From contig JAXLNO010003457.1 of the NCBI GenBank assembly GCA_038087875.1, forward strand, positions 1 through 64,000: a stretch of 64,000 nt of DNA, in the 5' to 3' direction. Under the pieces are notes generated by a model, which was not told the origin of the DNA, made no database searches, and was given only the letters and a program-made list of their open reading frames with translations. Made by a program: the position numbers and the translations under genes. This DNA comes from Malacoraja senta (lineage: Eukaryota). The first letter of the stretch is position 1. Each line of letters starts with the position of its first letter. Below, one piece after another: positions 331 through 54,476 of this stretch.

Positions 331-552
331 GATCCTGCACATTTAGCGGGTGAACAGTCCCTGGGGACAACCCTCTCAGAAGGATGGGATGACATGACGA
401 ATGTGAGGGGCAAAGTGCGGCTTATCCGCAACGCCGTTCACCAGGGCCGGTCCCCGCGGCAGAATAACAAGCCCCGCAAAAAGTCGAAGAAAAAGGGTTG
501 TTTCCGATTGCGGATGGACAAGATAGGCGCAATGAGCAAGTTGGGCTGTTAG
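331..552 (+). CDS. nppc: CNP-like prepropeptide, copy 1, exon 2 coding part (exon 1 expected ~75-160 bp left of the window): DPAHLAGEQSLGTTLSEGWDDMTNVRGKVRLIRNAVHQGRSPRQNNKPRKKSKKKGCFRLRMDKIGAMSKLGC*
   Basis: Acceptor ttgacag|GAT at 330/331. Open frame to TAG 550-552. The 17-residue Cys ring (499-549) matches the natriuretic motif CFxxxxDxIGxxSxLGC, with a stop directly after the second Cys (CNP hallmark). Donor CG|GTAAGT at 572/573. Confidence 0.93.
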   Translation, partial: DPAHLAGEQSLGTTLSEGWDDMTNVRGKVRLIRNAVHQGRSPRQNNKPRKKSKKKGCFRLRMDKIGAMSKLGC

Positions 553-849
553 ACACCACACTCCCAGCCACGGTAAGTTTCTGCTGCGCCCAATGCCGGC
601 ATTTATTTCACTGCGAATGTTTGTTGGGACCGAGAAACGCGGCGCTCCGCAACCTGTGGTTGTTCAGAGGAGAGTGCGTGAAACAAAGAGAGTTTCAGGC
701 AGCGAGTTGATTCAACACAAGTTCCGCTAATGTCCTCTCATCCTCCGCTTGTGCTGAAAGCGAGTTGTCCAGCGACTGCCGGGTGTCACCGTCGTTCGGC
801 CACTCTGCCTGTTACTGGCCCACTAACCGGCGCTTGTTTGTGTTGATAG

Positions 850-1230
850 GACACCGGACTCCGAACACTTTCTGGACGTCTTCTTGTTTCGCGAAAGTAG
901 CTTTTACTCCGAAAACGACGCCGTTTCTCCCGGTACGAAGAATGACATTTACCAGCGACTCTTGTGTAGAACCGCAACGGATCATGACTGTTTATTTAAT
1001 TTCTGCATAAATGTATTTATGTTTAAACTATATCTTTATAAAAGAAAGATATTTATGAAAGTTTATTTATGTAACAAACTGAAGAGAGGGTTTGTAACAC
1101 TTTAACAAGTAGAATTTGTAACATTTGTCCTAATAGCGATTACGTGTAAAATTGCATTTGACGACAGTCCGACAGTCTTTATTTATTGTAGTCGTGAAAT
1201 ACGAAATAAAAACAGACCTGCCAGCTCTCC
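850..1230 (+). other. nppc: Non-coding exon 3 (3'UTR) of CNP-like copy 1, with AU-rich elements and poly(A) signal
   Basis: Branch point CACTAAC 821-827, acceptor TAG 847-849, several ATTTA/TATTTAT motifs at ~990-1190, AATAAA 1205-1210. The 3' end is approximate. Confidence 0.75.
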
Positions 1231-1483
1231 GCTTGGTTTCCAGGCGCTTGTTTCAATTCAGCGCGGTTTGTTGGCGATTTCACTGGGATCACAGCCTCTG
1301 CTCCGCCCGCATTCCCGTTTTTCCTGACACAATTCCTGCCAAAATAGAGGGATTACACTTCCGTCAGTATTACCGCACACGCCAACATCCCGCCCGCACT
1401 CTCCGCCCCGCAACTCTCTGCTCGAGTGAAATACAAATGCGGGAGGAAGTCAGCGGGTCAGGCAGCGTCGTGGAGGGAATGGA

Positions 1484-1683
1484 CGGGGGGCTGTGGGGGG
1501 GGGGGGGTGAGAAGGAGCTGTGGGGGGTGGGTGGGAGGAAGCTGTGAGGGTGAGATGGGGCTGTGGGAGGGGGTTGGTGGTGGGGGCTGTGAGGGTGAAG
1601 AGGGCTGTGGGAGGGGACTGTGGGGGGGGTCTGTTGGGGGGGGGGTGGGGGGGTGGGAGGGGACTGTGGGGGGGGGGTGGTTG
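1484..1683 (+). repeat. G-rich low-complexity minisatellite (GGGGGCTGTG-like), G-quadruplex-prone; mirror at ~7435-7612
   Basis: Many G runs of 4-10 nt. Collapsed in copies 3 and 4 (~33280-33322, ~52612-52654). Confidence 0.8.
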
Positions 1684-1804
1684 GCTTGACCCAGGAGGTG
1701 AGGTGTGGACCGTGCACGCTCTGGACTCTTCACCCTCCAGCTGAGTCCCGTGGCAATCATTGCGGGCAAGATCCAATTGAACAAATCCGACAATATTTTA
1801 TATT

Positions 1805-1985
1805 GAGTCATACAGTGTGACCGTGTGGAAACAGGCCCCTCGGCCCAACCTGCCCACACCGGCCAGCATGTCCCAGCAACACTAGTCCCACCTGCCTGCG
1901 CTTGGGCCATATCCCTCCAAACCTGTCCTATCCCATGTACCTGTCTAACTGTCTCATAAACAATGGGATAATCTCAGCCTCCAGC
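1805..1985 (-). mobile_element. CR1-family 3' end fragment (mirror ~7128-7311; also ~32985-33170, ~52305-52490)
   Basis: Resembles the LDRYMD...EGYG ORF2 end plus 3'UTR seen in the CR1 at 14010-15115. Confidence 0.6.
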
Positions 1986-2437
1986 ACTTTGTATCTTCTT
2001 CCCTTTCACATTATGGGACAGACCTCATTTTAACGGAAGTCAACGTGACGTTATTTTACAAGTAATCTGTTAGCATCGAAAACATAATTACTTATAAAAT
2101 AAAGAATGATGAAAAATATACTTTTTAGAAATTCACGTCGGTGCAATGGAGAACGCCGGGGTCTATTGATCTATAATTTGACTCGACCAGACCAATGGGC
2201 GAACAGAAAGGTGCGGTCCTGATGTCATTTCAAAGGCTGAGTAGAAATTAGTATGTGATTTGTCTTCCGATTTTATTTCAAATCTGACCATCGGAACTCA
2301 GGAAAACGTTAAATCATTCAGATTCCGATCAGTTTATTGTCTTAAACACCAGAGTGCAATGAAATTCACTGTTGACATGAAACTTACAGAGTAAACAGTA
2401 TCCATATCGCAGCAGAATGGCGCAGGTCTGGACTGCT

Positions 2438-2680
2438 GTTATAAGGTCATAAGTGATAGGAGCAGAATTAGGCCATTCGGCCCATCATGTCTACGCCTTT
2501 CCATCATAGCTGATCTATCTCTCCCTCCCAACCCCATTCTCCTGCCTTTCCCCCCATAACCCCTGACACCTGTACTAATCAAGCATCTATCAATCTCTGC
2601 CTTAAACATATCCATTGATTTGGCCTCCATAGCCTTCTGTGGCAAAGCATTCCACAGATTCACCACCTTCTGACTAAAGA
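2438..2680 (-). mobile_element. CR1 LINE 3' fragment (mirror ~6413-6650)
   Basis: Encodes SQKVVNLWNALPQKAMEA...FKAEIDRCL...GYG, the CR1 ORF2 C-terminus, plus the 3'UTR stem and tail. Confidence 0.85.
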
Positions 2681-3255
2681 CTCTGTCTGCAGTAGTGCAT
2701 GAAATACCACCGTACAATAACGGGCTAACGGGTTGAGCTCAGGGTGAGAGGATGCTGCAGAGCCTTCGGGAGACAGCGAGATACAGGAGTCAGAGAGCGC
2801 GGGGAAGAGGCGCTTCTGAAGCCGGGACGTCCGGGATGGTCTTTGGCGGGTAGATGAATGGGGCACCAGGGTTCGCTATCCCAGTAGAGTTGGCCGGGTA
2901 TTATTCTCCCAGTGGCCCTGCCTGTGGTGAATATAGAAAATGGGGATCATCGGTGTTAGTCTTCCCGTCGCAGTCTCTGCACTGACAGCACCAGTGAACG
3001 GCTCAAATGTCATCCGTTGTTCAGTGTTCAAGGCTTCATTACGTCGGGCGCATCTTTGTACCGATTTACAACAATATAAACAAAGTGTGAAAAACCGAGG
3101 CGATGTGTCACCTTCAAAAACGTGTCCCATCAAAGACCACCAAGCTTGGTGGATGGAGTGCAGACACGGACTGAGGGTGGAAGTGGCATAAAGAGGGCGG
3201 GATATCAAATACGAACATTAAATTAATATGCAAACCAGTAAGGAATGAAGTAGCT

Positions 3256-4821
3256 AACGGATTCGTTCCGTCTGAAACATAACGCGCGATATAGGGGGGT
3301 TGCACGTAAGGTCAACGGGTCAAAGGGCGTTACGCACGGAGCAGCTCAATCCTTCTGGAGGACATGGCAGCTTCGGCATACACTGTTAACACACGAAAAC
3401 GCGTACTTTCTTCCCTGTTAAAAACCGCCGAAATAGTCAATTTTTGCGCTGTAAATAATTGTGGAGGGTGAATGAGCGCTCTGAACCAAATGCTCTAGTA
3501 TCTTTGCTCTGAACCCGAGCACCAAGGTGTAAGCGGCCGAACATCCTCGAGACAGCCCCCACTCCCCCCCTGTGGTCAGCGCTGTCCGGCCACGGCCGCT
3601 CTCCGCCCACCCTCCCCCTATGCGGCCGCACCGTGACGGGCTGTGAGTCGGCAGCGCACACACACGGGGAGGAATACCTGGCAACGTCCCCGTCAGCTGC
3701 AGCAGAGTTGGGGACAGTCTGGTCCCTCCGCCCACCCAGAGTCACTGACCCCCCAACGAACACCCCCCCCCCACGGACCACTCCCCCTCCCCCACCGATC
3801 CCCCTCCCCCGTCCACCCCCACCCCACCCCACCCACATCCACGCCCCCCACCCCTCCAACCACCACCCCGGACCACCCGGCAACATCTCCGCCAGCTGCA
3901 ACAGAGTTGGGGACATTCTGGTTCCTCCGCTCACACACAGTCACTGACCGTGCTGCACCGACACCCCCCCCCCCCGTTTTCAGGGAGACAGTGGGGGTGG
4001 GACTGATGATTGAGGGCGCCGATTGGATGAGAGAGATGTTGGTAAGCAGGCAGTGGGGGGGGGGGGACATGATGATTCAGCGCGTTGATTGGAGGAGGGA
4101 GGTGTCGGTCAGAGGCGGAAGTAGCGGGTTGGACTGAGGATAGAGCGCGGTGATTGGAGGAGGGAGACGTCCTGGTGGAGCAAAGTTCATAGAGCGGAGC
4201 ATGAATCAGCCGTTCGTTGGGCCTTTCATCGCCCGGCGCGGCTTAAATCGGCCGCGGGATGTTCCACCGCCCCGCGGTCAAATTGCTGCATCGAGGCGAT
4301 CGAGGCTCCCGATGTTGAAGCCCCTGCCGGGCGATGGAAGATCCCGCGGCCGGTTTTAAGCCGCGCTGGGCGACGAAAGGCCCCGCGAACGGGACGATTG
4401 AAGCCCCACGATACGGGGTGGGCGAAGCTGCTGTTGCTGGAGTTTGGAGTTGGTCACCAACCAGCTCAGCTCCCGATGTTTCCGTCCACAGGGCCCACAG
4501 CTGAAGCCTCGCACGTGTGTGTGTGTGTGTGTGTGTTGTGTGTGCGCGCATGCGCGTGCAGGCACCAGAAAATTGTGTCCCCCCCCATGGTTTGATAGCG
4601 ATTTCCCGCCTACTGCCGGAAGACATGGTAAGTTCACCGCGTGTACTCCGGTTGGCGCTGTGTAGCAACAGTACGGGTCATGGGTCGTGAGCTCGACTGC
4701 AGTACAAACTCCCTATAGATGCTGCCTCACCCGCTGAGTTTTGCCAGCATTTTTTATCTACCCAGGTTGGTACATTTGTTGGTTTATATCGTGCGTTAGG
4801 TTTCGGACGAACGAATCCGTT
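3256..4821. mobile_element. Putative non-autonomous DNA transposon bounded by imperfect ~38-bp terminal inverted repeats
   Basis: aacggattcgttccgtctgaaacataacgcgcgatata (3256-3293) vs tatatcgtgcgttaggtttcggacgaacgaatccgtt (4785-4821). No TSD or transposase seen. Confidence 0.45.
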
Positions 4822-5545
4822 GCATGCTCCTTTATAACATTTTACATAACATTTTACATTACAACTTGATTATTAAAACAAGGACAGCTTCAATTCTTGA
4901 TTTAAAAAATGTATACAACAATGACCCTAATCATCCCATTCAAACCACTCATTACTCTTGACTCAACCAAAATTATTTCTGAAATATTGGTCATAAATCT
5001 GGTGCAAAAATGCTCCAAAATTAAGCTCAGAATGTACCAGAGAGCATCTAAAACGCCAGAGCTTCCAGGGCCCGCTTAAGGGTCCCGGCCGCAAGGGTCT
5101 TTCAGCTCCGTGCTTGTGATATGCGTTGCGTGCACTTATTTCACATAAAATTCTTGTAATCCTGCCATGCCACCCCCCTTTTTGAAAAGCTTCTTACGGG
5201 CCTGGTGTATAATATTGTTGACACTGTCATAGGCCTTTCTTACATATGCTGTCACAACGCACTGTAGTCTCTAAACAACATTCAGTAATTTTCCTTGCGC
5301 TCCATTTCAGAATAATGGTGTTTTAAGCTGATAACTCGACACTAGCACATGCAATAAATAAATAAATAAATAAAAAGCGCAGCTTTCCAGCCCTTATCTC
5401 ATTGGCCACGCTCGGCTGCACATCGGTGTCAATCTGGTGGACTCTTCCATCTTCCTCTCGTCGTGGGGATGGGGGATTGGGAGGGGTCTCACAAGTGGAA
5501 TAGCCTAGGGCCTCTCTTCATCTAAATCCTGCCCTGGATGCCTCC

Positions 5546-8500
5546 TTCGGCCGCTTACACCTTGGTGCTCGGGTTCAGAGCAAAGATACTAGAGCATTTG
5601 GTTCAGAGCGCTCAGTCACCCTCCACAATTATTTACAGCGCAAAAATTGACTATTTCGGCGGGTTTTAACAGGGAAGAAAGTACGCGTTTCGTGTGTTAA
5701 CAGTGTATGCTGGAAGCTGCCATGTCCTCCAGAAGGATTGAGCTGCTCCGTGCGTCACGCCCTTTGACCCGTTGACCTTACGTGCAACCCCCCTGTATCG
5801 CGCGTTATGTTTCAGACGGAACGAATCCGTTAGCTACTTCATTCCTTACTGGTTTGCATATTAATTTAATGTTCGTACTTGATATCCCGCCCTCTTTATG
5901 CCACTTCCACCCGCAGTCCGTGTCTGCACTCCATCCACCAAGCTTGGTGGTCTTTGATTGGACACGTTTTTGAAGGTGACACATCGCCTCGGTTTTTCAC
6001 ACTTTGTTTATATTGTTGTAAATCGGTACAAAGATGCGCCCGACGTAATGAAGCCTTGAACTCTGAACAACGGATGACATTTGAGCCGTTCACTGGTGCT
6101 GTCAGTGCAGAGACTGCGACGGAAAGACTAACACCGATGATCCCCTTTTTTATATTCACCACAGGCACGGCCACTGGGAGAATAAATAATACCCGGCCAA
6201 CTCTACTGGGATAGCGAACCCTGGTGCCCCCTTCATCTACCCCCCAAAGACCTTCCCGGACGTCCCGGCTTCAGAAGCGCCTCTTCCCCGCGCTCTCTGA
6301 CTCCTGTATCTCGCTGTCTCCCGAAGGCTCTGCCGCCTCCTCTCACCCTGAGCTCAACCCGTTATCCCGTTATTGTACGGTGGTATTTCATGCACTACTG
6401 CAGACAGAGTCTTAAGTCAGAGGGTGGTGAATCTGTGGAATGCTTTGCCACAGAGGGCTATGGAGGCCAAATCAATGGATATGTTTAAGGCAGAGATTGA
6501 TAGATGCTTGATTAGTACAGGTGTCAGGGGTTATGGGGAAAAGGCAGGAGAATGGGGTTGGGAGGGAGAGATAGATCAGCTATGATGGAATGGCGTAGAC
6601 ATGATGGGCCGAATGGCCTAATTCTGCTCCTATCACTTATGACCTTATAACAGCAGTCCAGACCTGCGCCATTCTGCTGCCTGTGCCCGTCGTTATATTG
6701 ATCATCGCGATATGGATACTGTTTATTCTGTAAGTTTCATGTCAACAGTGCATTTCATTGCACTCTGGTGTTTAAGACAATAAACTGATCGGAATCTGAA
6801 TGATTTAACGTTTTCCTGAGTTCCGATGGTCAGATTTGAAATAAAATCGGAAGACAAATCACATATAATTTCTACTCAGCCTTTGAAATGATATCAGGAC
6901 CGCACCTTTCTGTTCGCCCATTGGTCTGGTCGAGTCAAATTATAGATCAATAGACCCCGGCGTTCTCCCATTGCACCGACGTGAATTTCTAAAAAGTATA
7001 TTTTCATCATTCTTTATTTTATAAGTAATTATGTTTTCGATGCTAACAGATTACTTGTAAAATAACGTCGCGTTGACTTCCGTTAAAATGAGGTCTGTCC
7101 CATAATGTGAAAGGGAAGAAGATACAAAGTGCTGGAGGCTGAGATTATCCCATTGTTTATGAGACAGTTAGACAGGTACATGGATAGGACAGCTTTGGAG
7201 GGATATGGCCCAAGCGCAGGCAGGTGGGACTAGTGTTGCTGGGACATGCTGGCCGGTGTGGGCAGGTTGGGCCGAGGGGCCTGTTTCCACACGGTCACAC
7301 TGTATGACTCAATATATAAGATATTGTCGGATTTGTTCGGTTGGATCTTGGCCGCAATGATTGCCACGGACTCAGCTGGAGGGTGAAGAGTCCAGAGCGT
7401 GCACGGTCCACACCTCACCTCTTGGGTCAAGCCAACCCCCCCCCCACAGTCCCCTCCCACCCCCCCCCCCACAGACCACCCCCACCCCCCCCCCACAGCC
7501 CCCACCACCAACCCCCCCCCGCAGCCCCATCTCACCCTCACAGCTCCCTCCCACCCACCCCCCACAGCCCCTCCCCACCCCCCCCCACGCCCCCCCCACA
7601 GCCCCCCGTCCATTCCCTCCACGACGCTGCCTGACCCGCTGACTTCCTCCCGCATTTGTATTTCACTCGAGCAGAGAGTTGCGGGGCGGAGAGTGCGGGC
7701 GGGATGTTGGCGTGTGCGGTAATACTGACGGAAGTGTAATCCCTCTATTTTTGGCAGGAATTGTGTCAGGAAAAACGGGAATGCGGGCGGAGCAGAGGCT
7801 GTGATCCCAGTGAAATCGCCAACAAACCGCGCTGAATTGAAACAAGCGCCTGGAAACCAAGCGGAGAGCTGGCAGGTCTGTGTTTATTTCGTATTTCACG
7901 GACTACAATAAATAAAGACTGTCGGACTGTCGTCAAATGCAATTTTACACGTAATCGCTATTAGGACAAATGTTACCAATTCTACTTGTTAAAGTGTAAC
8001 AAACCCTCTCTTCAGTTTGTTACATAAATAAACTTTCATAAATATCTTTCTTTTATAAAGATATAGTTTAAACATAAATACATTTATGCAGAAATTAAAT
8101 AAACAGTCATGATCCGTTGCGGTTCTACACAAGAGTCGCTGGTAAATGTCATTCTTCGTACCGGGAGAAACGGCGTCGTTTTCGGAGGAAAAGCTACTTT
8201 CGCGAAACAAGAAGACGTCCAGAAAGTGTTCGGAGTCCGGTGTCCTATCAACACAAACAAGCGCCGGTTAGTGGGCCAGTAACAGGCAGAGTGGCCGAAC
8301 GGCGGTGACACCCGGCAGTCGCTGCGTCAACTCGCTTTCAGCACAAGCGGAGGATGAGAGGACATTAGCGGAACTTGTGTTGAATCAACTCGCTGCCTGA
8401 AACTCTCTTTGTTTCACGCACTCTCCTCTGAACAACCACAGGTTGCGGAGCGCCGCGTTTCTGGGTCCCAACAAACATTCGCAGTGAAATAAATGCCGGC

Positions 8501-9093
8501 ATTGGGCGCTGCAGAAACTTACCGTGGATGGGAGTGTGGTGTCTAACAGCCCAACTTGCTCATTGCGCCTATCTTGTCCATCCGCAATCGGAAACAACCC
8601 TTTTTCTTCGACCTTTTGCGGGGCTTGTTATTCTCCCGCCGGGGCCGGCGTTCGGGAACCGCGTTGCGGATAAGCCGCACTTTGCCCCTCACATTCGTCA
8701 TGTCATCCCATCCTTCTGAGAGGGTTGTCCCCAGGGACTGTTCACCCGCTACATGTGCAGGATCCTGTCAAAGCAAGTGTTGTCACAGCGCGTTAAATCA
8801 GCTTATTTATTCACCGCCTTACACTTCCAAATGTTTACACATAACGCATATATAGCTGAAATTGTCACCAAACTCGCCCGTGGTATTACACCTGATGTCA
8901 TCTGGAATATTGAAATAGAATGAGCGCAAAATGACGGGACAACGGTTGTAGAGCGACTCTGTGAACAAACAGCCCAAGCGTATCGCGTGCATTCTCACCG
9001 TTCATTCGGTACATTTATGCGCAGAGTTTGTGTCAGACAGAAAGTGTTAAGAAAGACCTACTTGCTACCCGTGACACAGTGAGTTATTCTCGC
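5546..9093 (-). repeat. Right arm of the inverted segmental duplication
   Basis: Reverse complement of 1-3541 with few substitutions or indels. Confidence 0.95.
7865..8244 (-). other. nppc: 3'UTR exon 3 of CNP-like copy 2
   Basis: Exon 2 donor at 8523/8522, acceptor at 8245-8247, ATTTA-rich, AATAAA at 7888-7883. Confidence 0.72.
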
Positions 9094-9251
9094 CGCTGTG
9101 GTAGTTAGTGCACACGGTGAAACGCGGGGCGCGGGGATGTGCAGATGAACACATTTCATCCGGTTACCTGGATCGACGGAGTCAAAGGTTTGGCCTCCGC
9201 GGAGAGTAGAAGCAGTAAGAGTCCGGACAGCACCAGCGAGCAGAGGAACAT
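8543..9251 (-). CDS. nppc: CNP-like prepropeptide, copy 2, join(9251..9168, 8764..8543), 101 aa: MFLCSLVLSGLLLLLLSAEAKPLTPSIQ|DPAHVAGEQSLGTTLSEGWDDMTNVRGKVRLIRNAVPERRPRRENNKPRKRSKKKGCFRLRMDKIGAMSKLGC*
   Basis: Exon 1 has 28 codons with a hydrophobic signal peptide and EAKP, as in vertebrate CNP precursors. Phase-0 GT-AG intron of 403 bp (CAG|GTAACC ... ttgacag|GAT). Ring then stop. No frameshift. Confidence 0.95.
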
Positions 9252-9362
9252 CCCTTCTTCAAACGTCGGCGGGTCCCCGCCTCGACCCCTGTAATGAGTT
9301 TGTCGGAGTCGCGTCTGTCCGCGGTTCTAGAGGCGAATGGTGTTTCTCGCCGCTTCCCATCA

Positions 9363-9551
9363 TTTTATAACATGCAGTGACGTCAGCCAACGCCCCTTTT
9401 TCCAACTTGTTGGGACAGAGGAAGAAAAGCCGGATCCCCCTCCCTTCCCTCCCCCTCCCACCTCTCCCTCCCCTCCCCCTCCCTCCCCCATTCCCCAACC
9501 ACATGGTCTCCAATACTGAGTCCATGTGATGGAATTGGTGCGTTCGCCAAT
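9363..9551 (-). promoter_or_regulatory. Promoter of CNP-like copy 2: TATAAAA, palindromic CRE, GC-box-like motif, polypurine tract, inverted CCAAT
   Basis: TATAAAA 9369-9363; TGACGTCA 9378-9385; GGGGCGTTGG ~9387-9396; G/A tract ~9436-9490; CCAAT on the + strand at 9547-9551. The TATA box is ~110 bp upstream of the ATG. Confidence 0.8.
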
Positions 9552-9725
9552 GCGGGAAGGCGGCGGCTTCACAGTCGGAGCGGGCGATGGGTGGTTGGAC
9601 CATTTGATAATCAATTGACACATAAACCGATCCGGTGCGGATGCAGATCAAATTTTGATCGATTAAGAAACCACACGGATCACCCGTTGGTATCGCCCCT
9701 TACATATCCACCAACATGCTCGTGA

Positions 9726-11377
9726 CATGCTTAAACACGCAGGCTTATACCGAAAATAAACTACCAGAAACTTTAGCAGAATCAACAATAACGCTTATAC
9801 CCAAAAAAGATAAAGATTTAGATGAACCGGGTTCTTACAGAGCTATATCACTTTTAAATACGGATCTGAACATTTTAGCAAACATTCTAGCAAGAAGACT
9901 GAATAATTATATTAATAAATTGGTAAACCCGGATCAAACGGGATTTATACCCAAAAGACAATCATTTAATAACTTGAGAAGGCTTTTCAATATAATGTAC
10001 TCTCACAAAGAGGACATTGAAGATATTTCAGTCGTTACGCTGGATGCAGAGAAGGCATTTGATCAGGTAGAATGGCAGTATTTATATAATGTACTCGAAA
10101 AATTTAATACGGGAGAGAATTTTATTAGATGGGTTAAACTACTTTATGATAAACCTACGGCAAGAATATTAACTAACAATATGTTATCTTCAAAATTTTA
10201 TTTATCAAGGGGTAATAGGCAGGGTTGTGCCTTATCACCATTGCTATTTGCCCTTATGATAGAACCGCTGGCTGAAAGGATTAGAAATCATCCGAATATT
10301 CACGGATATAATACCAAGGACTCAAAGAATAAAATTTCATTATATGCTGATGATATTCTTTTATATATTACTAATACACAAACGAGTATTCCCACCTTAT
10401 TAACACTAATTGAGGAATTTGGTTCTTTTTCAGGATATAGAATAAAATGGAATAAAAGCGTACCTGATAAAGATCCCGAAAGATAGATGGGAAAAGTATC
10501 TGATGAATACACATAATTGTTCCATTAATGCAAGACATAATTTAATTCAATTTAAATTATTACACAGACTATATTATTCAAAAACGAGGTTGAATAAATT
10601 TTACACAAATGTCTCTCCCAGATGCGATAAATGTTTGTTTCAAAATGCCAATATAACGCATTCATTTGTAGGATGTACAAAGTTGAATACATTTTGGAGC
10701 GATATATTTGATATATTTACAAAGCTCTTCAAGTCAAGAATAGAACCTAATATGGAATGGATTATATTTGGAATAATATTAGAAGATAGCAATTTAAACA
10801 AAGACCAAAAAGTATTCTTTAATTATGGGTTAATAATTGGAAAGAAATTGATAATTTTGGAAAAATACAGCTATACCAACTATTAAAATGTGGATTAGGA
10901 ATATGACGGACATAGCACACCTTGAAGAAACGAGACTCCGCCTAATAGATAAATATGACCAATTCTTAAGGAGTTGGTCCCCTTTCATCGACTTTTTGGA
11001 ATCATGTGATGCAGCAGTACCGTAAAGATTACTGATTTCAGGTCAGGTCGTGGATAGATTTACATCTCCAAACAAAGATTTGAAAATTTCTTTTTTAAGG
11101 GTCTTTTTCTACTATTTCTACTTTCTATTTTTTCTTTTCTTATATACACACTTCACGTTTTTCTATTTTCTACTATTTATTTTTCCTCTTTCTTTTCTCA
11201 ATTTTTTTTTTCTTTCTTTTAAAAAAATTTTTTTTTTACCTCTTTTTCAAAAACATAAAACTAGAGGTTGTACATAGAATGCATTACGTTATGACATAGT
11301 TGGCACCTAAAATTAGGTACCACTGTATTGTTTTGTATTGTATTAACTTCTAATAAAATAAACAAAACAAAAAAAAA
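9726..11377 (+). mobile_element. 5'-truncated, internally deleted L1-clade LINE with poly(A) tail and 61-bp flanking duplication
   Basis: ORF 9716-10486 has RT motifs (YRAISLLN, LDAEKAFD, RQGCALSP, YADD). 10503-10886 has a C-terminal CDKC..H..C knuckle. AATAAA plus A-tail to ~11379. Absent from units 2 and 3. Confidence 0.92.
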
Positions 11378-11920
11378 AAGAAACCACACGGATCACCCGT
11401 TGGTATCGCCCCTTACATATCCACAAACATGCTCGTGAAAAACTAGTAAATATTCTGTGAAGTCGGGGGAATCTGACGAGCAGCTAATGTTATTTTACCG
11501 ATATCTAGCTGAGGTTTATCGAGATGCTAACACATCTTTGCGAAAGAATTGCAGAGAAACGATAGCCAAATCTTTGTTAATACTAAAACAGCATTAAAAT
11601 ATTGGCGTTATTTTAAAATGACTAATATTGTAAAGATATTTTATATTTAATTAACAGTGAATCCGGGATTGGACTTTAAACGATGGAACGGTACCAAATA
11701 ATTCGTTCATATTTCCACTCCTTTGTTTTAAAATTGGGTGTCGGTAATAATCAGGCACAAGGAACCGCAACGTATTTTCAGCAAAACACAAAGTACTGGA
11801 GTAACTGAGCCGGTCAGGCAACATCTGTGGAGGGAACGGACAGATGACGTTTAGAGTCGGGACCCTTCTTCAGACTGAAGGATCGCAGTCAGTCCATCCT
11901 GAGGATGCTATGAGAATGCA

Positions 11921-12175
11921 ACGTCACCTATCCATCCCCTCCACAGATGCTGCCTGACCCGCTGAGTTACTCCAGCACTCTGTGAAACGTCACCTATCCA
12001 TGTTCTCCACAGATGCTGCCTGACCCGCTGAGTTACTCCAGCACTCTGTGAAACGTCACCTATCCATGTTCTCCACAGATGCTGCCTGACCCGCTGAGTT
12101 ACTCCAGCACTCTGTGAAACGTCACCTATCCATGTTCTCCACAGATGCTGCCTGACCCGCTGAGTTACTCCAGCA
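11921..12175 (+). repeat. 66-bp tandem repeat x4 derived from a Penelope-like terminal repeat (x3 at ~35836-36012, x2 at ~55107-55220); inverted partner at ~11785-11878
   Basis: GAAACGTCACC at 11984, 12050 and 12116. The same motif ends the Penelope-like fragment at ~20575-20655. Confidence 0.8.
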
Positions 12176-24722: not shown

Positions 24723-24723
24723 A

Positions 24724-29500: not shown

Positions 29501-29516
29501 GTTCCTCCTCCCTCAC

Positions 29517-34956: not shown

Positions 34957-35145
34957 TTTTATAACATGCAGTGACGTCAGCCAACGCCCCTTTTTCCAAC
35001 TTGTTGGGACAGAGGAAGAAAAGCCGGATCCCCCTCCCTTCCCTCCCCCTCCCACCTCTCCCTCCCCTCCCCCTCCCTCCCCCATCCCCCAACCACATGG
35101 TCTCCAATACTGAGTCCATGTGATGGAATTGGTGCGTTCGCCAAT
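34957..35145 (-). promoter_or_regulatory. Promoter of CNP-like copy 3 (TATA + CRE)
   Basis: TATAAAA 34963-34957; TGACGTCA 34972-34979; polypurine tract and CCAAT as in copy 2. Confidence 0.8.
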
Positions 35146-43381: not shown

Positions 43382-44750
43382 ATACCTAGACCAGGTTGCC
43401 TCAAGGATTTGTCAACTCGCCTACATTGTTTTCCAGGTGTCTGCAGGATCAGCTAAGTACATTAAAGTTTAAAATGAATTCCACATTGGTGCAGTATGTT
43501 GATGACCTATTGGTAGCAAGTAAGGATGAATCCAGTAATCGGGAAGACTCTGCACAATTACTGAATCATCTAGCCGATCTAGGATATGTGGTTTCCCCAT
43601 CTAAAGTATTAGTAGCTCAGGAGAAAGTAACATTTCTAGGGATTATAATTTCGGCCACCGAAAGAAGTCTTGAGAAGAGCAGACTCTAACCTATTTGTCA
43701 ATTTCCAGTTCCAAAAGAAGCCAAACAAGTGAGGCAATGGCTTGGCATGGTCAATTATTGCAGACCCTGGATTCCAAATATAGCTCTAGAGACCAAGGAG
43801 CTAACACCCTATACCAGCAAGGAGGGTGAATTTAAAGTGACATGAGAGGCACAGGAAGGATTTGATGACTTGAAAATATCATTGATGCGAGCCCCGCCAT
43901 TGGGAAGGCCATTATACGATCGTCCCTTCCAGCTGCATTGTACAATTCTATCTGATTGTGCAACTTCAGTATTAATGCAAAAGCATGGGGATAGACATAG
44001 GCCAGTTGCATACTACTCCTCTAAATTAGACCAAGTACTCAAATCTCAGTACTCAGTAGATTTGCACTCAAATCTTAACTGCAATCTACAATAGTTTACA
44101 ATCGGCTGCTAATTTGACACTCCAGCAGCAAATTGTAGTGTACAGTTCACATTCGGTATCGGCATTGTTGGGGCAGCTTCAAACCCAGCATTTGACAATG
44201 GCCCGCCGAAATAAGTATGAGATCTACCTGCTAAACAATCTGAAATTACAGTTCAAGCACTGTACATTAATTAACCCAGCCTCTTTTCTTATTTCACCCC
44301 CAGAAGAGCGAGCAGAAGCAGGACACGACTGTCTATTTGTTACAGAGGAGGAAAAATCAGTGAGAGAGGACTTGAGGGATGTACCCAGGGAAAACCCTGA
44401 CATCACATTATATGTGGACGGTAGTGCATTCATTGGACCGCGAGGTGAGAGGTTGTCTGGGTATGCAATTATTAATCAAGGAATGGAAATTGTAGAAGCA
44501 GCTGCTTTTGAATGACCATATTCAGCACTACAATCTGAATTATTCACTTTAATTAGGGCGTATTATTGGGGAAGATCTGAAAGTAAACATTTACACTGAT
44601 TCTCGATATGCATTTGGAGTGGTGCATGATTTCGGACAATTATGGAAAAATAGAGGATTTCTAACTTCTGCCGGAACCCAAATATCACACGAATAATTGG
44701 TGATAAATTTATTGAAGGCCTTAATGCTACCCAGACAAATCTCCGTAATA
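43382..44750 (+). mobile_element. ERV pol fragment, unit 2 copy
   Basis: Near-identical to 23355-24722. Confidence 0.9.
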
Positions 44751-45222: not shown

Positions 45223-48200
45223 ATAGAAACATAGAAAATAGGTGCAGGAGTAGGCCATTCGGCCTTTCGAGCCTGCACCGCCATTCAATATGATCATGGC
45301 TGATCATCCAACTCAGTACGCTGTACCCGCCTTCTCTCCATACCCCCTGATCCCATTAGCCACAAGGGCCACATCTAACTCCCTCTGAAATATAGCCAAT
45401 GAACTGGCCTCAACTACCTTCTGTGGCAGAGAGTTCCAGAGATTCACCTGTGTGAAAAATGTTTTTCTCATCTCGGTCCTAAAGGATTTCCCCTTAATCT
45501 TTAAACTGTGACCCCTTGCCCTAGACTTCCCCAACATTGGGAACAATCTTCCTGCATCTAGCCTGTCCAACCCCTTAAGAATTTTGTAAGTTTCTATAAG
45601 ATCCCCCCTCAATCTTCTAAATTCTAGCGAGTACAAGCCGAGTCTATCCAGTCTTTCTTCATATGAAAGTCCTGACATCCCAGGAATCAATCTGGTGAAC
45701 CTTGTCTGTACTCCCTCTATGGCAAGAATGTCTTTCCTCAGATTTGGAGACCAAAACTGTACGCAATACTCCAGGTGTGGTCTCACCAAGACCCTGTACA
45801 ACTGCAGTAGAACCTCCCTGCTCCTATACTCAAATCCTTTTGCTATTAATGCTAACAAACCATTCGCCTTCTTCACTGCCTGCTGCACCTGCATGCCTAC
45901 TTTCAATGACTGGTGCACCATGACACCCAGGTCTCGTTGCATCTCCCCTTTTCCTAATCGGCCACCATTTAGATAATAGTCTACTTTCCTGTTTTTGCCA
46001 CCAAAGTGGATAACCTCACATTTATCCACATTATACTGCATCTGCCATGCATTTGCCCACTCACCCAGCCTATCCAAGTCACCTTGCAGCCTCCTAGCAT
46101 CCTCCTCACAGCTAACACTGCCCCCCAGCTTCCTGTCATCCGCAAACTTGGAGATGTTGCATTCAATTCCCTCGTCCAAATCATTAATATATATTGTAAA
46201 TAGCTGGGGTCCCAGCACTGAGCCTTGCGGTACCCCACTAGTCACTGCCTGCGATTCTGAAAAGGACCCGTTTACTCCTACTCTTTGCTTCCTGTTTGCC
46301 AGCGAGTTCTCTATCCACATCAATACTGAACCCCCAATACCGTGTGCTTTAAGTTTGTATACTAATCTCTTATGTGGGACCTTGTCGAAAGCCTTCTGAA
46401 AGTCCAGATATAACACATCCACTGGTTCTCCCTTATCCACTCTACTAGTTACATCCTCGAAAAATTCTATAAGATTCGTCAGACATGATTTATCTTTCAT
46501 AAATCCATGCTGACTTTGTCCAATGATTTCACCACTTTCCAAATGTGCTGCTATTCCATCTTTAATAACTGACTCTAGCAGTTTTCCCACTACCGATGTT
46601 AGACTAACTGGTCTGTAATTCCCCATTTTCTCTCTCCCTCACCTTTTAAAAAGGGGGGTTACATTAGCTACCCTCCAATCCTCAGGAACTACTCCAGAAT
46701 CTAAGGAGTTTTGAAAAATTATCATTAATGCATCCACTATTTCTGGGGCCACTTCCTTAATACTCTGGGATGCAGCCTATCTGGCCCTGGGGATTTATCG
46801 GCCTTTAATCCATTCAATTTACCTAACACCACTTCCCGGCTAACCTGGATTTCACTCAGTTCCTCTATCTCATTTGACCGGCGGTCCCCTGCTATTTCTG
46901 GCAGATTATTTATGTCTTCCTAAGTGGTTATTCAATTGGTCTGACATATCCTTGTTCCCCATGATCAATTCACCGGTTTCTGACTGCAAGGGACCTACAT
47001 TTGTTTAAACTAATCTCTTTCTCTTCACATATCTATAAAAACTTTTGCAGTCAGTTTTTATGTTCCCTGCCAGTTTTCTTTCATAATCTATTTTCCCTTT
47101 CCTAATTAATCCCTTTGTCCTCCTCTGCTGGACTCTGAATTTCTCCCAGTCCTCTAGTAGGCTGCTTTTTCTGGCTAATTTGTACGCTTCATCTTTTGTT
47201 TTGATACTATCCCTGATTTCCCTTGTTATCCACGGATGCACTACCTTCCCTGATTTATTCTTTTGCCAAACTGGGATGAACAATTTTTGTAGTTCGCCAA
47301 TGCAGTCTTTAAATGCCTTCCATTGCATATCCACCGTCAACCCTTTAAGAATCAATTGCCAGTCAATCTTGGCCAATTCACGTTTCATACCCTCAAAGTT
47401 ACCTTTCTTTAAGTTCAGAACCATTGTTTCTGAATTAACAATGTCACTCTCCATCCTAATGAAGAACTCAACCATATTATGGTCACTCTTGCTCAAGGGG
47501 CCACGCACAACAAGACTGCTAACTAACCCTTCCTCATTACTCAATACCCTGTCTAGAATAGCCTGCTCTCTCGTTGGTTCCTCTACATGTTGGTTTAGAA
47601 AACTATCCCGCATACATTCCAAGAAATCCTCTTCCTCAGCACCCTGCCAATTTGATTCACCCAATCTATATGTAGATTGAAGTCACCCATTATAACTGTT
47701 TTACCTTTGTTGCATGCATTTCTAATTTCCTGTTTGATGCCATCCCCAACTCCACTACTACTGTTAGGTGGCCTGTACACAACACCAACTAGCGTTTTCT
47801 GCCCCTTAGTGTTTCAGAGCTCTACCCATATCGATTCCACATCCTCCAAGCTAATATCCTTCCTTTCCATTGCGTTAATCTCCTCTCTAACCAGCAACGC
47901 TACCCCACCTCCTTTTCCTTTCTGTCTATCCCTCCTGAATATTGAATATCCCTGGATGTTCAGCTCCCAGCCTTGGTCTCCCTGGAGCCATGTCTCCGTG
48001 ATCCCAACTATATCATAATCATTAATAGCTATCTGCACATTCAACTCATCCACCTTATTACGAATGCTCCTTGCATTGAGACACAAAGCCTTCAGGCTTG
48101 TTTTTACAACGCTCTTACCCCTTATACAATTATGTTGAAAAGTGGCCCTTTTTGATTTTTGCCCTGGAATTGCCTGCCTGCCACGTTTACTTTTCACCTT

Positions 48201-49530
48201 GCTACCTATTGCTTCTACCCTCATTTTACACCCCTCTGTCTCTCTGCTCACACATTTAAGAAACCCACCACCTCTTATTCTCTGTTGATTATTTTTTTCT
48301 TCTTCCCCCCTACCTGTTGCATCTGAGTGCTTCCCTTCTCTGCCTCCTGCCTCACACACTGTCTACAAGCTTTCTCTATTTGAGTCCCTCCCCCCAACCG
48401 TTCTAGTTTAAAGTCTCCACCGTAGCCTTTGCAAATATCCCCGCCAGGATATTGATCCCCCTCGGGTTCAAGTGCAACCCGTCCTTTTTGTACAGGTCAC
48501 ACCTTCCCCAAAAGAGGTCCCAATGATCCAGAAACTTGAATCCCTGCCCACTGCACCAGTCCTTCAACCACACATTTATCCTCCACCTCGCTCCATTCCT
48601 ACTCTCACTGTCGCGTGGCACAGGCAGTAATCCTGAGATTGTTACCTTTGCGGTCCTTCTCCTTAACTCTCCTCCTAACTCCCTAAATTCTCCTTTCAGG
48701 ACCTCTTCCCTTTTTCTACCTATGTCATTGGTACCTATTTGTACCACGACCTCAGGCTCCTCTCCCTCCCATTTCAGGATATCTTGGACACGTTCAGACA
48801 CATCCCGGACCCTGGCACCAGGGAGGCAAATTAACATCCGGGTCTCCTGACTGCGTCCACAGAATCGCCTATCTGACCCCCTAACTATAGAGTCCCCTAT
48901 TACTACTGCCCTCCTCTTCTTTTCCTTACCCTTCTGAGCAACAGGACCGGTCTCTGTACCGGAGGCCTGGCCGCTGTCGCTACCCCCAGATAGGCTGCCC
49001 CCCCCAACAGTACTCAAACAGGAGTACTTATTGTCAAGGTGTACAGCCACTGGGGTACTCTCTAGTCCCTGCCTGTGCCCCTTGCCCCTCCTAACCGTGA
49101 CCCACTTGCCTGCCTCCTGTGGTCTTGGAGTGACCACCTCTCTATAACTCCTCTCTATGACTTCCTAACTCTCCCTGACCAGACGGAGGTCATCGAGCTG
49201 CTGCTCCAGGTTCCTAATACGGTCCCTTAGGAGCCCCATCTCGACACGCCTGCCGCAGATGTGGACGTCTGGATGGCTATCAGACTCCTTGACTTCCCAC
49301 ATCTGACATCCAGAACAGTAAACTGCCCTGGCCTTCATACTCCTCCTGTACCTAGGATACAATACAATACAATACAAGTACAATACAAAGTACAATCTGC
49401 TGGAAGAAATCTGCAGGGATCTGACTCCCAATCAGCTGCTTCCTCTAGTCCGCTTCCACCAATCAGCGGCTTCCTCAAGCCCACTTGTTTTGGATTGTAA
49501 ACTGCGAATGGAACGTTACCGATTTGGGTT
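45223..49530 (-). mobile_element. Near full-length CR1, unit 2 copy, with the same disablements
   Basis: ORF coordinates are offset by exactly 20027 from unit 1. Confidence 0.93.
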
Positions 49531-52500
49531 CCTCCTCCCTCACCAACAGCTCCAACAGCTCCAACAGCTCCAACAGCTCCAACAGCTCCAACAGCTCCAA
49601 CAGCTCCAACAGCTCCAACAGCTCCAACAGCTCCAACAGCTCCAACAGCTCCCGGCCTCTGTGGAACAAAGCCCCGCGATGGGGTTTTGTACTCACCGCC
49701 CGGACTTTACTCCTCCCACACCAACAGCTCCAACGGCTCCCGGGTTTCTCTTCATGAGGCCATGTCTTCATTGACGTGGTTTCCCATTTTGTTGGAGAAG
49801 GAAGGAACTCTAACCTACTCGCACCTCTTAACAATTTCCCTTTTAATTTTGAAATTAACAAATTCGTTTTTGGACAAATTTCAAATCAAAATGTTCCAGG
49901 ACGCAGCCAATCACACTCACATGCGTTTCGAAGCCCATCTCCTATCCTCGATCTTAATCTGAATGCATGTAAATGAATTCTAGGCACATGAGCAAAATTG
50001 AACACAAAAAGGAAATTAGTCCACTTATCAGAAGTATACCTAACCACACTCCTGCATAAATCAAAAACATCCACTTATTACAATTCAAATCACGAACTCT
50101 AAGAAATCCTCCTCGTGGCGCAATCAATCAGCAGGTGTGTCTGCGTGTAAGTATCTGAGTCTCTCCCTGAAGTTTTGGATGAGGAGCTACGAGAAGATAC
50201 TGAGCTTGGATAAACTGGGTATAGATTGGCCGGAATACGCTAGTTTGTTCAAGAATACCACAAGCAACCGTCAACATCTCCTTCCTGTGTAGGAACCACG
50301 TCCCGTGCTCTCGTATCCAGAGGCCACGCGTCCGATCTACCCTTCTACTGTCGGACTGTCTCTTCCCTCATGCTCTGCTGCTGCAGACCAGCTATGCCCT
50401 CACCACAACGTTCGGTGCTTCGCCGTGTTCACCCCCCAGGTCTCCAGTGCTCTCGCCGCATGGGTCCCCGGTTATTTACCCGGAGAAGGGAGCAGACGCG
50501 GATCTATATTATTCAGTCATCACATAGTGGTGTGTTTATTCTTATAGGTCACCTACATTTAGATGTGCACCACTTTTATTTCTACAAGGAAAGATGTAGA
50601 TTGGTTACTTCACTTATTAACCAATGTAGTGCTTTATTACTAGAAGCTCCGCCTACTACCCCCAACCGTTCATATTATCGCATTTAATCTACACGGCAAC
50701 ACAGCTGAAGCAACATGCTGCAGCATGTTATGAGTGCCTTTCAATAAATACTGTTGTACCATGTTCGTGAGTATGACCTGGTCATTTGACACTGGGTGAT
50801 CCGCAACTTCTGCTGGGAATTGAAACCGGATAAGAGTGACAAATAACTAAAAAATAAACGCACTCACAGATAATAGGTATCTGGCACAATAATGAGAGTC
50901 TAATGCAGTGAAAGTGATCTGACGCACCGGGGACAATAAGCAGGATTTGGCGAGGTAATGGTGAATAGTAAGGAGGGCACGAAATGGCAATTGCTGTCGG
51001 TATTTGCAGTGTATATAATTAGTATATAATATAATTATTATTTGCTTATAACGCTTAGGTAGCGGGCGGAACACTTTTCCGTTAATCCTCCTCTGTTGAG
51101 TACTGAAGCATACTTTGAATATGAATTCTGACTAAGCTTGTCTTGTATGATAATTACAATGTGTGTTTATGTATTGTCCATACATTTTTACATCATTCAT
51201 GGGGGATGGGGACACAATCCTTTGGCCCATCACTGTTATTGAAGTACTGCCCGGATATATGTAAAGATACATGAATTATTTTACTGAATTGATTTTAAAG
51301 AATAATTAAAACACTGTATATTGATCAAGAGATTGACGATCAATTGCGTTAAAATAATAGGACTTGGGTTGTTTCCAATTGTACATATTTAGTTCTTTGT
51401 AGGTAATTCTTTAAAATATCTGGTATATACTTTTAAAAGACGTCAGATAATTGGGTGATAATGTTGCTTTTGTTTTCTTTGGCGTTATTAAATAATTTGC
51501 CCAACAAATTGTGAATAACTCCACTGTTAGAGGGAGTTATAAGATTTAAGCTTTATTTGGATGGTGAATATTTGGACAGTGTACAATTGCTGCAAGCTTG
51601 TTAGATACTTGTACAAAGCTAGACACAAAAAGCTGGAGTAACTCAGCGAGACAGGCAGCATCTCTGGAGAGAAGGTATGGGTGACGTTTTGGGTCGAGAC
51701 CCTTCTTCAGACTGATTTCAGGGGAGTGGGCAGGACAGAGATAGAATATAGTCACAGACATTAAGACTGGTGGGAAAAGTGCAAAGGTGGAGGGGATGGA
51801 GGGAGAGGGAAAGCAAGGGTTACTTGAATTTAGATAAGTCAATGTTCATACCGCTGAGGTGTAAGCTGCCCAAGCGAAATATGAGGTGCTGTTCCTCCAA
51901 TTTGCGCTGGGCCTCACTCTGACAATGGAGGAGGCCCAGGACAGAAAGGTCAGATTGGGAATGTGAGGGGGTGTTAAAGTGCTGAGCAACCGGGAGATCA
52001 GGTAGGATAAGACGGACTGAGCGGAGGTGTTCAGTGAAACGATCGCCTTTCTACTCAGCCTTTGAAATGACATCAGGACCGCACCTTTCTGTTCGCCCAT
52101 TGGTCTGGTCGAGTCAAATTACAGATCAATAGACCCCGGCGTTCTCCCATTGCACCGACGAGAATTTCTAGAAGTATATTTTCATCATTCTTTATTTTAT
52201 AAGTAATTATGTTTTCGATGCTAACAGATTACTTGTAAAGTAACGTCGCGTTGACTTCCGTTAAAATGAGGTCTGTCCCATAATGTGAAAGGGAAGAAGA
52301 TACAAAGTGCTGGAGGCTGAGATTATCCCATTGTTTATGAGACAGTTAGACAGGTACATGGATAGGACAGCTTTGGAGGGATATGGCCCAATCGCAGGCA
52401 GGTGGGACTAGTGTTGCTGGGACATGCTGGCCGGTGTGGGCAGGTTGGGCCGAGGGGCCTGTTTCCACACGGTCACACTGTATGACTCAATATAAAATAT

Positions 52501-52789
52501 TGTCGGATTTGTTCGGTTGGATCTTGGCCGCAATGATTGCCACGGACTCAGCTGGAGGGTGAAGAGTCCAGAGCGTGCACGGTCCACACCTCACCTCTTG
52601 GGTCAAGCCAATCCCCCCCCCCCCACAGTCCCCTCCCAACCCCGCCCCACAGTCGGAAGTGTAATCCCTCTATTTTTGGCAGGAACTGTGTCAGGAAAAA
52701 CGGGAATACGGGCGGAGCAGAGGCTGTGATCCCAGTGAAATCGCCAACAAACCGCGCTGAATTGAAACAAGCGCCTGCAAACCAAGCGG

Positions 52790-53169
52790 AGAGCTGGCAG
52801 GTCTGTGTTTATTTCGTATTTCACGGACTACAATAAATAAAGACTGTCGGACTGTCGTCAAATGCAATTTTACACGTAATCGCTATTAGGACAAATGTTA
52901 CCAATTCTACTTGTTAAAGTGTTACAAACCCTCTCTTCAGTTTGTTACATAAATAAACTTTCATAAATATCTTTCTTTTATAAAGATATAGTTTAAACAT
53001 AAATACATTTGTGCAGAAATTAAATAAACAGTCATGATCCGTTGCGGTTCTACATAAGAGTCGCTGGTAAATGTCATTCTTCGTACCGGGAGAAACGGCG
53101 TCGTTTTCGGAGGAAAAGCTACTTTCGCGAAACAAGAAGACGTCCAGAAAGTGTTCGGAGTCCGGTGTC
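52790..53169 (-). other. nppc: 3'UTR exon 3 of CNP-like copy 4
   Basis: Donor 53448/53447, acceptor 53170-53172, AATAAA 52813-52808. Confidence 0.72.
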
Positions 53170-53467
53170 CTATCAACACAAACAAGCGCCGGTTAGTGGG
53201 CCAGTAACAGGCAGAGTGGCCGAACGGCGGTGACACCCGGCAGTCGCTGGGACAACTCGCTTTCAGCACAAGCGGAGGATGAGAGGACATTAGCGGAACT
53301 TGTGTTGAATCAACTCGCTGCCTGAAACTCTCTTTGTTTCACGCACTCTCCTCTGAACAACCACAGGTTGCGGAGCGCCGCGTTTCTGGGTCCCAACAAA
53401 CATTCGCAGTGAAATAAATGCCGGCATTGGGCGCAGCAGAAACTTACCGTGGCTGGGAGTGTGGTGT

Positions 53468-54176
53468 CTAACAGCCCAACTTGCTCATTGCGCCTATCTT
53501 GTCCATCCGCAATCGGAAACAACCCTTTTTCTTCGACCTGTTGCGGGGCTTGTCATTCTCCCGCCGGGGCCGGCGCTCGGGAACGGCGTTGCGGATAAGC
53601 CGCACTTTGCCGCTCACATTCGTCATGACATCCCATCCTTCTGAGAGGGTTGTCCCCAGGGACTGTTCACCCGCTACATGTGCAGGATCCTGTCAAAGCA
53701 AGTGTTGTCACAGCGCGTTAAATCAGCTTATTTATTCACCGCCTTATACTTCCAAATGTTTACACATAACGCATATATAGCTGATATTGTCACCAAACTC
53801 GCCCGTGGTATTACACCTGATGTCATCTGGAATATTGAAATAGAATGAGCGCAAAATGACGGGACAACGGTTGTAGAGCGACTCTGTGAACAAACAGCCC
53901 AAGCGTATCGCGTGCATTCTCACCGTTCATTCGGTACATTTATGCGCAGAGTTTGTGTCAGACAGAAAGTGTTAAGAAAGACCTACTTGCTACCCGTGAC
54001 ACAGTGAGTTATTCTCGCTGCTGTGGTAGTTAGTGCACACGGTGAAACGCGGGGCGCGGGGATGTGCAGATGAACACATTTCATCCGGTTACCTGGTTCG
54101 ACGGAGTCAAAGGTTTGGCCTCCGCGGAGAGTAGAAGCAGTAAGAGTCCGGACAGCACCAGCGAGCAGAGGAACAT
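53468..54176 (-). CDS. nppc: CNP-like prepropeptide, copy 4, join(54176..54093, 53689..53468), 101 aa: ...AEAKPLTPSNQ|DPAHVAGEQSLGTTLSEGWDVMTNVSGKVRLIRNAVPERRPRRENDKPRNRSKKKGCFRLRMDKIGAMSKLGC*
   Basis: Same exon lengths, intact splice sites, 403-bp intron, intact ring. Confidence 0.95.
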
Positions 54177-54287
54177 CCCTTCTTCAAACGTCGGCGGGTC
54201 CCCGCCTCGACCCCTGTAATGAGTTTGTCGGTGTCGCGTCTGTCCAAGGTTCTAGAGGCGAATGGTGTTTCTCGCCGCTTCCCATCA

Positions 54288-54476
54288 TTTTATAACATGC
54301 AGTGACGTCAGCCAACGCCCCTTTTTCCAACTTGTTGGGACAGAGGAAGAAAAGCCGGATCCCCCTCCCTTCCCTCCCCCTCCCACCTCTCCCTCCCCTC
54401 CCCCTCCCTCCCCCATTCCCCAACCACATGGTCTCCAATACTGAGTCCATGTGATGGAATTGGTGCGTTCGCCAAT
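54288..54476 (-). promoter_or_regulatory. Promoter of CNP-like copy 4 (TATA + CRE)
   Basis: TATAAAA 54294-54288; TGACGTCA 54303-54310. Confidence 0.8.

Follow-up and report, generated by a model that had tools for sequence, protein, structure and literature searches.

Organisation of the locus

The DNA analysed here, which we call the window, is a gap-free stretch of 64,000 nt from the skate Malacoraja senta (assembly GCA_038087875.1, contig JAXLNO010003457.1, positions 1 to 64,000 of the forward strand). It contains exactly four copies (c1-c4) of a three-exon natriuretic-peptide gene that by its sequence is of the CNP (C-type natriuretic peptide) kind. Copies c2, c3 and c4 are complete on the minus strand, with start codons at 9251, 34845 and 54176, while c1 lies on the plus strand and is truncated: its exon 2 begins at 331, and its exon 1 is missing because the window start falls within c1 intron 1. 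The first-pass annotation of this DNA had claimed at least four intact copies, three of them complete and one truncated by the window. A six-frame scan for C-x15-C-stop agrees, returning four matches, all with the ring CFRLRMDKIGAMSKLGC (ring plus stop: 499-552, plus strand; 8543-8596, 34137-34190 and 53468-53521, minus strand), and a tblastn search of the precursor against the window found these four copies only, with no extra copy or fragment. The features are as follows.

331-572, plus strand: c1 exon 2 (coding sequence 331-549, stop 550-552, ring 499-549)
850-1225, plus strand: c1 exon 3, 3' untranslated region (3'UTR) with six ATTTA and AATAAA, end approximate
9363-9385, minus strand: c2 promoter motif TGACGTCA plus TATAAAA, exact motif match
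9168-9251, minus strand: c2 exon 1, coding part of 28 codons; the exon reaches 5' to at least 9324 (RNA contig)
8523-8764, minus strand: c2 exon 2 (coding sequence 8764-8546, stop 8545-8543, ring 8596-8546)
7870-8244, minus strand: c2 exon 3, 3'UTR, with AATAAA at 7888-7883, 3' end approximate
34957-34979, minus strand: c3 cyclic-AMP-response-element-like (CRE-like) plus TATA motif, exact motif match
34762-34845, minus strand: c3 exon 1, coding part
34117-34358, minus strand: c3 exon 2 (coding sequence 34358-34140, stop 34139-34137)
33465-33838, minus strand: c3 exon 3, 3'UTR, end approximate
54288-54310, minus strand: c4 CRE-like plus TATA motif, exact motif match
54093-54176, minus strand: c4 exon 1, coding part
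53448-53689, minus strand: c4 exon 2 (coding sequence 53689-53471, stop 53470-53468)
52795-53169, minus strand: c4 exon 3, 3'UTR, end approximate
1-9093, no strand: inverted duplication with c1 and c2 tail to tail (arms 1-3541 and 5546-9093, 96% identical, spacer ~2 kb)
31672-64000, no strand: direct tandem units with c3 and c4 (period 19,321 bp; 31672-35780 matches 50993-55112; 96.6-99.1% identical)

Each complete copy encodes a precursor of 101 aa consisting of a signal peptide, a basic prosegment and the 17-residue ring, followed by the stop. The signal peptide is a 20-aa hydrophobic leader ending at the boundary AEA/KP, and the coding part of exon 1 (84 nt, 28 codons) reads MFLCSLVLSGLLLLLLSAEA followed by KPLTPSIQ and ends CAG/GT. 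Intron 1 is 403 nt long and of phase 0, lying after codon 28 in c2, c3 and c4. Exon 2 codes for 73 aa plus the stop, its ATG-led portion being 52 aa, and intron 2 (278 nt) begins 20 nt past the stop, so that exon 3 is non-coding. In c2 this gives the ATG at 9251, the end of exon 1 at 9168, intron 1 at 9167-8765, exon 2 at 8764-8523 with the stop at 8545-8543, intron 2 at 8522-8245 and exon 3 from 8244 to ~7870; c3 and c4 have the same layout. Of these elements, the first pass had correctly read the AEA/KP boundary, the phase-0 intron, the basic prosegment, the ring with its immediate stop and the lengths of exon 1 and of the ATG-led part of exon 2. Splice sites are GT..AG throughout and the same between copies, as is the Kozak context, and the 3'UTR of every copy carries six ATTTA pentamers and AATAAA. 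A CRE-like TGACGTCA followed by TATAAAA lies ~110 nt before each ATG and is identical in c2, c3 and c4 (three exact matches against zero expected by chance).

Splicing in related organisms

The gene is transcribed and spliced in related organisms. An RNA contig of 712 nt from organism K joins exon 3, exon 2 and exon 1 on the minus strand, skipping exactly 8245-8522 and 8765-9167 with GT..AG borders, and a contig from organism D spans the exon 1-exon 2 junction. The junctions CAG/GAT and CACG/GAC that had been predicted from the DNA are thus reproduced to the base by RNA contigs, and the proposed check for an absence of spliced transcripts turned up spliced contigs in these two relatives. Compared with c2, the spliced contigs differ at 25/242 sites in exon 2, 9/312 in exon 3 and 7/158 in exon 1. 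Transcription of this gene type in at least two other organisms also means that it is not confined to Malacoraja senta, and the description of the expansion as lineage-specific is not supported.

A third contig, from organism A (run X1; probably the source species), covers the unspliced stretch 7870-9370 entire. It differs from c2 at 10 sites, and the four that are listed match none of the four window copies: at 8640 the contig agrees with c1, at 8651 and 8660 it has the state that c1, c3 and c4 share, and at 8942 it shows a change seen in no window copy. The contig may be chimeric or represent another copy or allele, and hints at more variants beyond the four copies.

Duplication of the locus and copy number

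Self-comparison of the window shows c1 and c2 as an inverted duplication and c2, c3 and c4 as direct repeats. The gene copies sit in ~19-kb segmental duplications with a DNA identity of 96-99% between copies and an identical ring, so that "divergent", as the copies had been called, is an overstatement. The c2-c3 unit is ~25.6 kb long, ~6 kb longer than the c3-c4 unit, because of extra long interspersed nuclear element (LINE) insertions at 9725-11378 and 15592-19199 (1.65 and 3.6 kb, each present in one unit only). The array had also been said to run off both window edges. On the left the edge does cut c1; on the right the repeat unit continues to the edge (58328-64000 matches 39632-44433), with no gene shown beyond it.

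Immediately downstream of c1 and of c2 (1364-1646 and 7475-7728) there is a G-rich tract of ~283 nt whose gene strand shows GGGG(T)GGG runs. It marks both arms of the inverted duplication and is missing from the corresponding position in c3 and c4.

With units that are 97-99% identical, the copy number could have been inflated during assembly by haplotype duplication or mis-joined repeats, leaving one or two real genes, and the likely source organism is represented by one contig with uncalibrated depth. We consider such inflation very improbable: the four copies each carry private substitutions in roughly equal numbers, the units are told apart by the 283-nt G-rich tract (c1 and c2 only), by the one-unit LINE insertions of 1.65 and 3.6 kb and by their mixed orientation, and the organism A contig, with its 10 differences from c2, matches no window copy at the four sites listed.

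Assignment to the natriuretic-peptide family

The Pfam family ANP (PF00212), whose curated gathering cut-off is 27 bits, is matched by each of the four exon-2 translations at 31.1-33.4 bits (E 5e-8 to 2.7e-7). Because these scores exceed the cut-off and RNA contigs match both junctions, the four-copy gene family is not a product of chance. Among solved structures CNP is the best match (1jdp_H, E 6.8e-4), followed by lebetin 2 and then by atrial natriuretic peptide (ANP), and CNP clusters stand at ranks 2-3 of the language-model neighbours, which serve as a lead only. The 17-residue, two-cysteine ring is present in 4/4 copies, its disulfide being predicted from sequence, and reads C-F-R-L-R-M-D-K-I-G-A-M-S-K-L-G-C, against the family's consensus signature C-F-G-x3-D-R-I-x3-S-G-L-G-C. 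Of the consensus residues F, D, I, S and LGC are kept. A strict regular expression requiring CFG gave no match in six frames of the window; it failed because of the G-to-R change, where the looser C-x15-C-stop scan succeeded.

Within the family, several features point to the CNP type, as the first-pass annotation had proposed. The stop follows the ring cysteine directly in all copies, leaving no C-terminal extension; all copies contain RLIR, and S-K-K-K/R-G-Cys is preceded by KR, KK or NR as a predicted processing site. Exon 1 holds the signal peptide and the first pro-residues and exon 2 the rest, as in the human CNP gene NPPC, and an intron interrupts the 3'UTR. Together with the Pfam match and the best structure match, the tail-less ring, the five residues between the dibasic site and the first cysteine, and the exon layout identify these, at the level of sequence, as natriuretic-peptide genes of CNP type.

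Human CNP-22 (NPPC, PDB 1JDP chain H) shares with the predicted skate peptide the 17-residue disulfide ring without a tail, 11/17 ring residues and the five-residue spacing from the dibasic site, and the genes share a signal peptide ending EA/KP and three exons with the first intron after the first few pro-residues. In the skate ring, Arg replaces the Gly of CFG, and Lys replaces both the Arg of DRI and the Gly of SGLGC. The computed net charge is +6 for the predicted 22-mer and +12 for the 40-mer, compared with +2 for CNP-22, and the skate gene further differs in its shorter precursor (101 aa), in being multi-copy rather than single-copy and in its fast-evolving prosegment, CNP being described as the best-conserved natriuretic peptide (PMC10454581). 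ANP is closer in the ring (12/17 residues, including R-M-D and I-G-A) and likewise has three exons with intron 2 just after the ring, but it carries a C-terminal tail where the skate gene has a stop. In teleosts, CNP1-4 represent several CNP-type genes per genome, encoding tail-less 22-aa peptides released by dibasic or furin cuts (PMC10454581, PMC8215749). Whereas those genes are old, dispersed and single-copy with a consensus ring, the skate copies are ~1% apart and form one inverted-plus-tandem array.

Among elasmobranchs, which share animal group and peptide family with the genes described here, CNP from the shark heart drives chloride secretion by the rectal gland and carries the canonical ring. 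The elasmobranch natriuretic system is the textbook case of a one-peptide (CNP) system, and CNP has been described as the sole natriuretic peptide of this group. The stretch IGAMS in the skate ring is the same as in shark CNP. In sharks, CNP circulates as a hormone that the heart releases (PMC11000733). For animals said to possess a single conserved CNP, the multi-copy CNP-type gene and its non-canonical ring represent an unusual, amplified variant within a known hormone family. The array could be the skate's own amplified and altered orthologue of the single elasmobranch CNP, in which case skates would be without canonical CNP, and the IGAMS stretch shared with shark CNP fits this. Pfam scans of 20 other open reading frames (ORFs) in the window returned LINE domains only (reverse transcriptase, endonuclease, GDSL esterase, zf-RVT), so that the window offers no flanking host gene for synteny, and losing the most conserved natriuretic peptide (PMC10454581) would be unexpected; we regard this origin as quite improbable. 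Alternatively, the array could form an additional CNP-derived family beside the canonical hormone, tandemly amplified, fast-evolving and highly cationic, with a new receptor selectivity or a non-hormonal role, for example in defence or exocrine secretion. This is possible but, in our view, doubtful; if true, it would overturn the single-peptide picture and be the first such recruitment known in cartilaginous fish.

Recruitment of CNP-derived peptides to new uses is known from the rapidly evolving snake BPP-CNP precursors and from platypus CNP. Lebetin 2 of Macrovipera (PDB 1Q01) shares with the skate peptide a basic or proline-rich N-terminal extension that aligns with exon 2 residues 45-73, but the venom peptides matched here keep CFG, DRI and SGLGC where the skate ring does not, and skates are without a venom apparatus. 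Natriuretic peptides have been recruited into snake, lizard and platypus venoms, and human natriuretic peptides are reported to be antimicrobial. By analogy, the skate product might be a strongly cationic ring peptide co-opted for host defence or for exocrine secretion, whether in skin mucus or from a reproductive or other gland, and amplification would then allow it to be made in bulk. The high charge of both predicted peptides relative to CNP-22, the replacement of three receptor-consensus residues by Arg or Lys, the multi-copy genes with fast change outside the ring and the rank of the viper venom peptide as second-best structure match, aligned through its basic extension, all agree with such a role, as does the AU-rich 3'UTR, which suggests inducible expression. 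Defence and venom families, however, usually vary the mature peptide and keep the signal and pro regions, while the ring is invariant here, and skates are not venomous, which makes co-option of this kind unlikely.

Database and literature searches returned no previous description. Among 5.8 billion clusters, word-indexed protein searches found none sharing three 5-residue words with either exon 2 (73 aa) or the complete precursor of 101 aa. When exon 2 was compared by exhaustive phmmer with 1.84 billion representatives, no match reached E<=0.001; given the short query and huge library this search has little power and does not show that relatives are absent. Exact-product look-ups of the 52-aa parts of c1 and c2 and of the three 101-aa precursors gave no gene record, although automatic annotation may list them. 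A literature search, with the limits of such searches and short of proof, found no paper with the ring string or a skate natriuretic gene expansion.

Sequence change among the copies

At non-coding sites any two copies differ by ~1%, with a star-like site pattern, which upholds the earlier proposal of a recent multi-copy duplication. The 168 coding sites of the prosegment differ by 3-7% between copies. Over all four copies, 16/168 prosegment sites are variable compared with 24/1143 non-coding sites (Fisher p=1e-5), and amino-acid-changing substitutions in the prosegment are in 3-10-fold excess over the flanking non-coding DNA. None of the ring sites varies (0/51), an invariance that is only nominally significant relative to the prosegment (p=0.026) and not unusual against the 1% background. 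The 18 variable coding sites comprise 16 non-synonymous and two synonymous ones. Eight coding changes separate c1 from c2-c4; all are non-synonymous, and 0.77 would be expected from the flanks (Poisson p=1.5e-6). Between species, exon 2 likewise differs at 25/242 sites as against 16/470 in exons 1 and 3 (p=3e-4).

Where c1 reads HQGRSPRQ, c2-c4 read PERRPRRE, which creates a new polybasic RRPRR site. The c2-c4 type looks derived because at 8650, 8640, 8635 and 8613 the K and D contigs agree with c1. Changes in the prosegment fall on predicted processing sites, the dibasic before the 22-mer being KR, KK or NR; codon R54 has changed twice, to W and to S, and N-glycosylation sequons have been created (NRS in c3 and c4, NVS in c4).

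The changed stretch of c2-c4 is a perfect 6-bp inverted repeat, CGCCGG-CC-CCGGCG (c2 8639-8652), which has two mismatches in c1, and two of the eight type-defining substitutions complete this palindrome, one per arm. In GC-rich DNA the palindrome could have arisen by chance, or it could reflect template switching. The clustered changes are mostly C/G transversions and not CpG transitions, so that CpG hypermutation was rejected as their cause.

The survival of intact copies amid decayed surroundings had been taken in the first-pass annotation as a sign of selection. At ~1% divergence, though, intact 303-nt reading frames are expected by chance, so that intactness says little on selection, and a LINE ORF of 1,099 aa nearby is intact too. 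The excess of coding changes is the better argument, although gene conversion could also produce such an excess. Young redundant duplicates under no special selection, with clustered differences left by gene conversion, GC-biased conversion or a local mutational quirk, would fit the low and star-like non-coding divergence as well as the clustering itself, since seven of the eight c1-versus-rest changes lie within 45 nt (8655-8613), four of the eight run from AT to GC towards c2-c4 with none opposite, and the stretch forms the inverted repeat that is imperfect in c1. The c1 states shared by the K and D contigs also allow the two types to be old. On the other hand, biased conversion does not favour C/G transversions, and four of the eight changes are of this kind; the eight later exon 2 changes among c2-c4 comprise six non-synonymous and two synonymous ones, with two more non-synonymous in exon 1; R54 changed twice independently; and exon 2 evolves ~3x faster between species than the UTR exons. 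Persistence of two types despite homogenised flanks would itself imply selection. Duplication without selection seems an unlikely account of the pattern.

A probable CNP-type peptide with an altered ring

The explanation that we consider probable is that the window contains a real, transcribed and recently amplified CNP-type family of the skate, whose processed peptide has shifted receptor selectivity and has been amplified for dosage. The signal peptide would be removed after AEA, and proprotein convertases would cut at RLIR, the equivalent of the RLLR site from which mammalian CNP-53 arises, to release a 40-aa peptide. If the dibasic KR or KK, which stands five residues ahead of the ring, were cut next, the product would be a 22-aa peptide, SKKKG plus ring, with the length and layout of CNP-22 and a charge of +6 instead of +2. 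The peptide would most likely be a ligand of GC-B and/or the clearance receptor, with a selectivity that has probably changed, since basic residues stand at three of the ring's consensus positions; whether it acts on natriuretic-peptide receptors is, judged as a step of its own, an evenly balanced call. Inverted and then tandem segmental duplication would have raised the copy number and, with it, probably the dosage. The ring stays fixed and the residues ahead of it change quickly, processing and glycosylation sites included; a benefit of dosage and selection are what we infer.

Several points weigh against this explanation. The spliced RNA comes from organisms K and D and not demonstrably from Malacoraja senta, and these contigs are ~10% different from c2 in exon 2. 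The ring breaks the consensus of the family three times, with G changed to R in CFG, R to K in DRI and G to K in SGLGC, and activity on guanylyl-cyclase receptors is therefore not assured. The 16:2 ratio of non-synonymous to synonymous changes is by itself not different from neutral (binomial p=0.16), a diverged donor outside the window could have supplied the c1-versus-rest cluster through a single gene conversion, and half of the changes in this cluster are AT-to-GC toward c2-c4, as biased gene conversion would give. Copy number is based on a single assembly, and the peptide and its receptor are predicted from the sequence.

If the amplified CNP-type family proposed here is expressed as such, it would add a second branch to the single-peptide natriuretic system of elasmobranchs and provide a fresh example of a hormone gene amplified and repurposed. 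The changed ring would also serve as a natural experiment for learning which of its residues determine the receptor that is chosen, a question that bears on CNP analogues used in growth disorders (PMC10454581).

Repeats and mobile elements of the window

Rfam and tRNA scans of the window found nothing. The intact LINE ORF2 of 1,099 aa (15682-18981, minus strand) has endonuclease and reverse-transcriptase domains and lies in the 3.6-kb insertion at 15592-19199, which is 94% identical to a decayed LINE at 25196-28777 and 45223-48804. It looks younger because it is present in only one repeat unit, and is possibly an active element. An ORF of 244 aa with a GDSL esterase/lipase domain occurs at 28376-29110 and 48403-49137 (both minus strand), adjoining LINE reverse transcriptase, and probably represents an esterase-type ORF1 from a CR1/L2-like LINE.

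In each unit, paired 2.5-kb inverted repeats that are 98% identical bracket a LINE-rich core (20238-22769 versus 30193-32723, with equivalents at 40265-42796, 58961-61495 and 50062-52047), and these could have helped the array to form by promoting inversion and unequal exchange. Tandem repeats of 66 bp (2.7-4 copies) and a 106-bp repeat with (CCAACAGCT)n are found at 11920-12182, 35843-36020, 29534-29871 and 49543-49652, and their copy number varies between units.

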